Source: Macrostomum hystrix
Lineage: Eukaryota; Animalia; Platyhelminthes
NCBI GenBank assembly: GCA_950097015.1
Contig: CATNEN010000029.1
Coordinates: 744,001-808,000 of the forward strand
Length of the DNA stretch: 64,000 bases
Direction of reading: 5' to 3'
The stretch's first letter is position 1. Each line of letters begins with the position of its first letter. Shown piece after piece: positions 54,601-57,600 of the stretch. A program made the translations under genes and the position numbers. The notes below the pieces were generated by a model. That model was not told the DNA's origin. It saw only the letters and a list, made by a program, of their open reading frames with translations, and ran no database searches.

Positions 54601-57600
54601 GCGTGGTCGGCATGCTGGATCCGCCGCGTACTGAAGTCTTCGACAGCATCCAGAAGTGCCGCAAGGCCGGCATCCGCGTCATTGTCATCACTGGAGACAA
54701 CAAGGCGAGTGATCTCTGGATAACTGACCGTTTATTCATGGACTAATCCGAAATCCGAAGACAAGTCAAACACTCTATAGACTAATCAGAAAGTCTATAG
54801 ACTAATCAGGAAGTCTATAGACTAATCAGGATGTCTATAGTCTCTAATCAGAAAGTCTATAGACTAATCAGGAAGTCTATAGTCTAATCAGGAAGTCTAT
54901 AGTCTAATCAGGAAGTCTATAGACTAATCAGGAAGTCTATAGTCTAATCAGGAAGTCTATAGTCTAATCAGAAAGTCTATAGACTAATCAGGAAGTCTAT
55001 AGTCTCTAATCAGAAAGTCTATAGACTAATCAGGAAGTCTATATTCTAATCAGAAAGTCTATAGACTTTCGCTATAGAGAGACAGAAAACTCTCTAGACT
55101 AATAAGAAAACTCTCTAGACTAATCAGAAAATTCTCTAGACTTTAGATACAAAACACAATAGCTAGACAGCTGAACAAAATGTCTAGACAGCTGAACACA
55201 ATGTTTAGATCACAGAACACAGTGGCTAGACAGCTGAACACAATGTTTAGATCACAGAACACAGTGGCTAGACAGCTGAACACAATGTTTAGATCACAGA
55301 ACACAGTGGCTAGACAGCTGAACAAAATGTCTAGACTGCTGAACAAAATGTCTAGATGGCTGAACACAATGTCTAGACAGCTGAACACAATGTTTAGATC
55401 ACAAAACACAGTGGCTAGACAGCTGAACACAATGTCTAGATAGCAGAACACAATGTTTAGATCACATAACACAGTGGCTATACAGCAGATCTTCACTCAA
55501 ACTGCAGGCCACCGCAGAAGCCATCTGCCGCCGCATCGGCGTGTTCGGCGAGACCGAGTCCACCCATGGCAAGAGTTTCACTGGTCGCGAGTTCGACGAC
55601 CTCTCCGTTGAGGCGCAGCGAGATGCCACCAAGCGAGCCAAGCTATTCGCCCGGGTGGAGCCCTTCCACAAGCAGAAGATTGTCGAGTACCTGCAGATGG
55701 ACGGCGAGATCAGCGCCATGACTGGCGACGGTGTCAACGATGCCCCGGCGTTGAAGAAGGCCGAAATTGGCATCGCCATGGGCAGCGGCACCGCTGTGGC
55801 CAAGACCGCCTCCGAGATGGTGCTGGCCGACGACAACTTCAGCTCCATCGTGGCCGCCGTGGAGGAGGGTGAGCGAGAGAGTGACGGCAGATATGATTAG
55901 GAGACTTAAGGCTAGAGACGGGCAAGATAAAAGGCAGATGAGATAATATACACTTGAGATAAGACGCAGGTGAGATGTGGTATATGATGCAGGTGAGGTA
56001 CAGGTCAGATGAGAAATATATTCTAGACAGGTGAGGTTATATTGAGGAAATAAACAATAAGATTCGCGTATAGATAGTCATACATATGAGATTAGCAGAT
56101 TAGGATTGACTATAGGATTAGCATAGAAAAATATGGAGTTGGCATAGACAATCGGATTGGCATAGACAATCGGATTGGCATAGACAATGGGATCGGCATA
56201 GACAATGGGATTGGCATTGACAATGGGATTGGCATAGACAATCGGATTGGCATAGACAATGGGATTGGCATAGACAATCGGATTGCCATAGACAATCGGA
56301 TTGCCATAGACAATCGGATTGCCATAGACAATGGGATTGGCATAGACAATGGGATTGGCATAAACAATGGGATTGGCATAGACAATGGGATTGGCATAGA
56401 CAATGGAATTGGCATAGACAATGGGCTAAATCATTACTATGAACTGCCCAACACAGGCCGGGCCATCTACAACAACATGAAGCAGTTCATCCGCTACTTG
56501 ATCTCGTCCAACATCGGCGAGGTTGTCTCGATCTTTCTAACCGCCGCCCTCGGCCTGCCCGAAGCCCTGATCCCCGTGCAGCTGCTGTGGGTGAACCTGG
56601 TCACCGACGGCCTGCCGGCCACCGCCCTCGGCTTTAACCCGCCGGATCTGGACATCATGGACAAGGCGCCGCGCGGCACCAAGGAGCCCCTCATCAGCGG
56701 CTGGCTGTTCTTCCGCTACATGGCTGTCGGCACCTACGTCGGCTGTGCCACTGTGGGCGCCGCCGCCTGGTGGTTCATGGCCTACAGCAAGGGCCCGCAG
56801 CTTAACTACTACCAGCTGGTAATGTCCGGCCTCCTTAATGCATTTTTTCGCTAAGAATCTGCCTTCAACAATTTGACCACAAATTGTGAGGCCTACATCA
56901 GTAGTCCTTGGATTGCCCGAGACAGATAAAATCGATAACACTGCATGTCAAGGGAAATAAATAATAAAATATATGATATTTTACCAGGACGATACGATAA
57001 GATAAGGTGAGAGAAGGTCAGAAGTCGGCGAGCGGCGATAGATCAAAGGCGCGATGAAAGTCAGTTATATGAGTTTTAATGTCTGTTTTTATGAACCATA
57101 AAAAACCATTCGCTATAATCCTTGGCCGAGGATCTCCCCCCTGACAATGACCAAGCCGATCTCGTAACACGGGGAAGTAATCGATACTTGCAGACGCATC
57201 ACATGCAGTGCCTGGCCGAGGAGCAGAACTTTGCCGGCATCGACTGCAAAATCTTCAATAATCCCAAGCCAATGACCATGGCTCTGTCTGTCCTAGTGCT
57301 AATTGAGATGCTCAATGCTATGAACAGGTGAGAATTATGTCCGTTCCGCCTTGCTAATGCCGAGCAATCCCCTCCCTTTGCTCCTCATTTTCAGACCCAT
57401 CAGGCCCAGTGCCTGGCCCAGGAGTCGCGCTTTGAGGGCATCGATTGTGCAATTTTCTCGCACCCGAAACCGATGACAATGGCACTGAGCGTGCTGGTTG
57501 TCATCGAAATGTGTAACGCCATGAATAGGTGGGGGCGTGCGAGCGTGCCTATCTTGTCTTTTCTCGGCCTTGCCATCCCCGCCTTGACTGCCTGTCACTT

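Follow-up and report, generated by a model that had tools for sequence, protein, structure and literature searches.

A tandem pair of homologous, probably mutually exclusive exons encoding luminal loop L7-8 and helix M8 in a SERCA-type gene of Macrostomum hystrix

The window, which is the whole stretch of 64,000 nucleotides of Macrostomum hystrix DNA that was analysed, contains a gene for a SERCA-type Ca2+-ATPase (Table 1), whose exon layout was derived from open reading frames in combination with local tblastn. All five large exon pieces matched the SERCA-type model TIGR01116 best (E 1e-37 to 2e-80), rather than the PMCA, PMR1 or Na/K types, and the gene product is therefore a member of the SERCA group (P-type ATPases IIA). 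The model was scored for each exon separately, and the cut-off of 703 bits for the whole protein was reached by the crude sum of these scores only (>900 bits). In addition, the Pfam domains E1-E2_ATPase, Cation_ATPase, Hydrolase and Cation_ATPase_C were detected in the gene. The 5' end of the constitutive exon that precedes the exon pair described below lies in or before positions 56456-56499.

Table 1. Positions of the mapped SERCA-type gene and of the exons and introns around the exon pair 8A/8B (numbering of the window).
Feature	Position	Strand	Description
SERCA-type Ca2+-ATPase gene	51652..60361	+	Start codon (MENSF..) through exon 10; the last C-terminal exon lies outside the mapped part
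Upstream constitutive exon (M6-M7)	56500..56818	+	Ends with ..NYYQL in phase 0; identified by translation and TIGR01116 (E 4e-44)
Intron before exon 8A	56819..57193	+	375 nt; weak pyrimidine tract at the acceptor
Exon 8A	57194..57327	+	134 nt, phase 0 to 2; second half of L7-8 and M8, ancestral type
Intron 8A-8B	57328..57394	+	67 nt, GT-AG; CTAAT 30 nt from the donor; strong pyrimidine tract at the acceptor
Exon 8B	57395..57528	+	134 nt, phase 0 to 2; derived type, with a small residue at position 874 and Gln at 879
Intron after exon 8B	57529..59727	+	2199 nt
Downstream constitutive exon 9 (M9)	59728..59845	+	Entered in phase 2

Most of the long introns of the gene are packed with short tandem repeats (53912-54088, 54774-55486, 56139-56425, 59910-60187 and 60417-60873), which consist of units of 18-32 nt with copies that are up to 100% identical. 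Furthermore, a candidate GC-AG intron was observed within 54705-55508; it follows the exon ending with ..ITGDNK and apparently starts with GC (AAG/gcgagt).

Exons 8A and 8B are neighbouring, homologous, equal in length and phase and flanked by intact AG/GT sites, as expected for a tandem-duplicated exon pair. The acceptor of 8A reads ttgcag and its donor gtgaga; the respective sites of 8B read ttttcag and gtgggg. Of the 134 nucleotides, 91 are identical between 8A and 8B (68%; 35/45, 37/45 and 19/44 at the first, second and third codon positions), as are 33 of the 44 encoded residues (75%), and the Nei-Gojobori estimates amounted to pN 0.19 and pS 0.84. Both peptides were aligned without gaps to residues 871-914 of rabbit SERCA1a (E 3e-12 for 8A and 2e-13 for 8B), and both comprise the cysteine pair of the luminal loop L7-8 (C876 and C888, 12 residues apart) as well as the site-I glutamate E908 of M8. 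A search for a third or decayed copy of exon 8 by local BLAST with the whole window as subject revealed none.

Since 134 is not a multiple of 3, the reading frame is kept only if a single one of the two exons is included. With either 8A or 8B alone, the frame stays open through exons 9 and 10, and the leftover AG of the respective exon forms a serine codon with the first T of exon 9. If both exons are joined, a stop codon occurs 79 nt into exon 8B, and if both are skipped, a stop codon occurs in exon 9. The initial annotation had described two paralogous 134-nt exons running from phase 0 to phase 2 with intact splice sites and a 67-nt intron between them, and coordinates and sequence agree with this description. 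Its statements that synonymous positions have diverged under a conserved protein, which indicates selection on both copies, that inclusion of both exons shifts the frame, and that the cysteine pair and the site-I glutamate are retained in both exons are likewise borne out by the values given above. The difference in loop charge that it listed (EEQNFAG..KIFNN versus QESRFEG..AIFSH) is confirmed as well.

For comparison with other animals, relatives were located by a word search with both exon peptides, which yielded 19 short open reading frames representing the same exon on other animal contigs, and the matched contigs were then scanned by tblastn for copies of A and B. A protein search with the upstream exon returned only fragments and non-animal full-length representatives. 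Tandem pairs in the order A-B were detected in the contigs L001, L002 (with L003-5), L006, L007-9, L010 and L011/12, in Trichobilharzia regenti (L016; A at 6371, B at 6583) and in the snail Biomphalaria glabrata (L017; A at 11147, B at 11905). L002 can be assigned to a hymenolepidid tapeworm, since it shows 92-100% identity to the Hymenolepis diminuta protein, with an A exon that matches completely. Altogether, nine loci from flatworms to molluscs hold the pair, and in all of them both copies are 134 nt long, open and flanked by AG/GT. In the relatives, the intron between A and B ranges from 55 to 624 nt, with 55-89 nt in the parasitic flatworms and 258-624 nt in their other loci. The closest relatives of the Macrostomum exons 8A and 8B are flatworm exons, and 8B is 91% identical to the B exon of T. 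regenti. Because the same pair was found in other genomes, its presence in Macrostomum is far beyond chance. A single exon was found in the rotifer Rotaria sp., in L013/14 and in L015, and also in the priapulid Priapulus caudatus, in which no assembly gap separates this exon from exon 9.

An additional trace of the pair is present in the cuttlefish Acanthosepion pharaonis. In its ATP2A model (CAE1326731.1, P0170), the first 34 residues of A are joined in frame to the whole of B, and therefore the cuttlefish genome has both exons. The exon pair has led to this fusion, which is an error of the annotation.

In the ENA assembly ERZ25072999, two further tandem exons of 86 nt each (L007:8789-8874 and L007:9295-9380; also present in L008 and L009) were observed at the end of M7, just upstream of the 8A/8B pair and both flanked by AG/GT. 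The length of 86 nt does not correspond to whole codons either, so that a second exclusive pair seems to be present here.

The exons were also traced in spliced products, for which profile searches with a C-terminal alignment provided the named proteins. Gene models in which the upstream exon is joined to B and B to exon 9 are available for Cichlidogyrus casuarinus, Dibothriocephalus latus, Schistocephalus solidus, T. regenti and Fasciola gigantica, and models containing A for H. diminuta and B. glabrata (isoform X3); in these named models, which were predicted automatically, a single exon is picked. Continuous open reading frames on contigs of roughly 1 kb and metatranscriptome entries, which must originate from spliced mRNA, contained B alone (P0289, P0290, P0250) or A alone (P0291, P0350/P0179, P0178). 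Among the sequences of the relatives, A and B were never joined in frame, except in the faulty cuttlefish model, and among the products compared no single species showed both mRNA forms. Seven sequencing runs were found to contain 6-38% of the sampled words. The conservation of both copies suggests that both exons are also used in Macrostomum.

The residues that separate the two exon types were determined by a comparison of 13 A-type, 15 B-type and 9 single or outgroup exons, column by column. Only the positions 874 and 879 (SERCA1a numbering) are fully diagnostic. Position 874 is occupied by Met or Leu in A and in the outgroups (Phe in one outgroup) and by Ser or Ala in B; position 879 is Glu in A, Glu, Asp or Gly in the outgroups and Gln in all 15 B exons. 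Both positions are luminal and are located two residues before and three residues after C876, respectively. Positions 873, 882 and 893 mostly track the exon type, and E908, N911, N914 and both cysteines are invariant in all exons compared. The ligand residues of M8 do not differ between the types. As A shares its residues at 874 and 879 with the single-exon outgroups, A is the ancestral form, and B is a derived luminal loop, which is altered right beside Cys876. In Macrostomum, 8A and 8B also differ at positions 906 and 910 of M8, for which no such rule is found across species. The difference at residue 910 (Leu in 8A, Cys in 8B), reported in the initial annotation as IEMLN versus IEMCN, does exist in Macrostomum, but it is confined to this species and L011 and is thus specific to species and not a feature of the exon type.

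A maximum-likelihood tree was calculated from 37 exon peptides with 44 columns, the B exons being derived from flatworms, molluscs and further contigs. All 15 B-type exons were placed on one side of a single branch, with an ultrafast bootstrap value of 94 and an SH-aLRT value of 91, which are below the star threshold and not strong if taken alone. This branch was recovered in 95% of the bootstrap trees, with the A-type and single exons outside, and the B clade agrees with the plain residue signatures. Across A-A, B-B and A-B comparisons, pS reached 0.65-1.0 and is thus saturated, and pN amounted to 0.07-0.33. Saturated synonymous sites together with such little change in the protein show that both copies are under selection, and in combination with the B clade they place the duplication before the split of flatworms and molluscs. 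Both copies have been maintained by purifying selection. The rotifer and the priapulid, which do not possess the pair, are compatible with an origin within the Lophotrochozoa (few outgroups were compared).

From these observations, it is very probable that 8A and 8B represent a tandem-duplicated, mutually exclusive exon pair of the SERCA gene, in which each exon encodes the second half of L7-8 with the cysteine pair and M8 with the site-I glutamate. The initial annotation had proposed just such exons and two pumps differing at the luminal face; the A-B pairs, the B clade and the single-exon products of the relatives as well as the luminal position of the diagnostic residues lend support to this proposal. 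The duplication was indeed found in other flatworm and lophotrochozoan SERCA loci, as it had suggested to search for, and the case in which one exon would be unused and decaying in relatives does not apply, because both copies are intact there. Messenger RNAs with both exons or with neither would be removed by nonsense-mediated decay. The splice sites of the two exons are unequal: in 8A, the acceptor is weak and the donor strong; in 8B, the acceptor is strong and the donor weaker. Unequal splice sites are the usual substrate of regulated exon choice, and the selection of A or B is presumably controlled through them. The resulting pumps would have a common Ca2+ site and a different behaviour of the luminal loop, which could concern the redox state of the cysteine pair, the binding of luminal partners or luminal gating, and their use probably differs between cells or stages.

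A further suggestion of the initial annotation was that steric exclusion may contribute, owing to a CTAAT motif near the donor of 8A, although it regarded this argument as weakened by similarly short introns elsewhere. In a stronger form of this idea, exclusivity would be enforced mainly by steric hindrance, with the branch point of the 67-nt intron too near to the donor of 8A. Distant branch points have been published as an exclusion mechanism (PMC7969005). Exons 2 and 3 of alpha-tropomyosin and exons 4a and 4b of OGDH are steric pairs, which resemble 8A/8B in having a short intron and a branch-like motif near the upstream donor. Apart from the CTAAT motif located 30 nt from the donor, no good yTnAy motif lies at a usable distance from the acceptor, and the parasitic flatworms likewise have a short A-B intron (55-89 nt). 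However, a constitutive intron of the same gene with the same layout and similar size (71 nt, 52611-52681), which is spliced, has a CTAAT motif 33 nt from its donor. The long A-B introns of the other loci (258-624 nt), most of which contain branch-like motifs at the usual spacing from the acceptor, distinguish the pair further from those of alpha-tropomyosin and OGDH, and the incompatibility of the reading frame alone already accounts for exclusivity. It is therefore unlikely that steric hindrance is the main cause of exclusion, and with A-B introns of 55-624 nt among the relatives the near branch point finds no support.

Exon choice could also depend on selector sequences that compete for RNA pairing with a docking site, as in the insect Dscam1 gene. 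A 15-nt pair with 80% complementarity, formed by the donor region of 8A (57321-57335) and a segment downstream of 8B (57711-57725), would fit to such a mechanism, but its perfect core of 8 nt corresponds to the expectation by chance in 1.3 kb, and the predicted fold of the region 57120-57640 is not unusual in comparison to shuffled sequences (z = -0.95). Around 8A/8B, just two inverted repeats at chance level were found in the search for docking and selector elements of the Dscam1 type, so that this mechanism must be considered very improbable. Incompatibility of U2 and U12 splice sites, as in JNK, was also considered as a candidate and rejected: the donors gtaatg, gtgaga and gtgggg are all of the U2 type, and none matches the U12 consensus /[AG]TATCC.

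If one of the two exons were an unused relic, the gene would produce only a single pump. The poor pyrimidine tract before the acceptor of 8A might point to such a pseudo-exon, but in nine loci both copies have retained the length of 134 nt, an open frame and the AG/GT sites despite saturated synonymous sites, and the spliced products of the relatives contain A in some cases and B in others, which makes an unused relic scarcely credible. An assembly artefact, in which two alleles or paralogues would have been collapsed in tandem, can practically be dismissed as the source of the pair, since the copies are just 68% identical and separated by a proper intron, and since the same arrangement occurs in independent assemblies of other phyla.

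An exclusive exon pair at this site of a SERCA gene differs from the kinds of SERCA diversity known so far. Splicing at the C-terminus, as in vertebrate SERCA2a/2b and in Artemia, Caenorhabditis elegans and Pinctada, likewise provides several pumps from one gene, and the extra tail of SERCA2b likewise has its effect on the luminal or membrane side. In contrast, the variable part in the flatworm and mollusc genes is internal (residues 871-914) and consists of one of two homologous exons, without an alternative 3' end. The isoforms of invertebrate SERCA have been described as C-terminal variants (PMC3527596, PMC6987452), and reviews ascribe the diversity of SERCA isoforms to gene copies and C-terminal splicing. 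Exclusive exons are known in other genes: for the selectivity-filter exons of NALCN (PMC3557258) and the exons of coq-2 (PMC7434440), exclusive pairs are reported that are common to flatworms, molluscs and other groups. These resemble 8A/8B as homologous neighbouring exons of equal length that give two functional forms per gene; unlike there, another gene is concerned here, and a functional difference between A and B in SERCA is a prediction. The internal SERCA pair is visible in public gene models, but in the literature searched on SERCA splicing and exclusive exons no description of it was found.

In mammalian SERCA2, the luminal pair Cys875/Cys887 is implicated in redox control with participation of ERdj5, SEPN1 and ERp57 (PMC7603117), and exactly this cysteine pair and its surroundings are encoded by 8A and 8B. 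By analogy, the A and B forms may differ in their luminal redox control. A more far-reaching reading, which is offered as a tentative possibility, is that the B exon arose within the Lophotrochozoa more than half a billion years ago and would provide a second SERCA whose luminal loop has lost the conserved acidic residue beside Cys876, and thereby a different luminal redox or partner control in particular cells, for example in muscle versus other tissues. In some lineages (L007), the exclusive M7 pair would be added, and up to four luminal faces could then be formed per gene.

If the pair is used as proposed, a deeply conserved internal exon choice in flatworms, including flukes and tapeworms, and in molluscs would rewrite the loop with the cysteine pair and leave the Ca2+ site untouched, and 8A and 8B would represent a natural pair of pumps for asking what the loop L7-8 does. 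Furthermore, public gene models silently mix the A and B forms, and one cuttlefish model fuses them, which matters if helminth SERCA proteins are compared or used as targets.

A second SERCA paralogue was observed in schistosomes (P0213 from Schistosoma margrebowiei and P0252 from S. turkestanicum). Its exon-8 region (THHLQCQLEPSLFKG..) is neither of the A nor of the B type. Since schistosomes thus also have a separate paralogue, the view of the initial annotation that the exon pair replaces the vertebrate multi-gene solution is doubtful.

Some of the retrieved sequences were of a different origin. P0241 and P0301, which are NCBI records labelled Klebsiella pneumoniae, are fragments of a vertebrate-type SERCA1 and represent animal contamination of bacterial assemblies, and P0302 and P0303, which were left out of the comparisons, resemble mammalian, possibly human, SERCA2. 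Finally, the region 14000-22000 of the window showed a GC content of about 0.39 and an AT skew of -0.6, being very rich in T on the forward strand; it is probably a satellite or a long repeat array.
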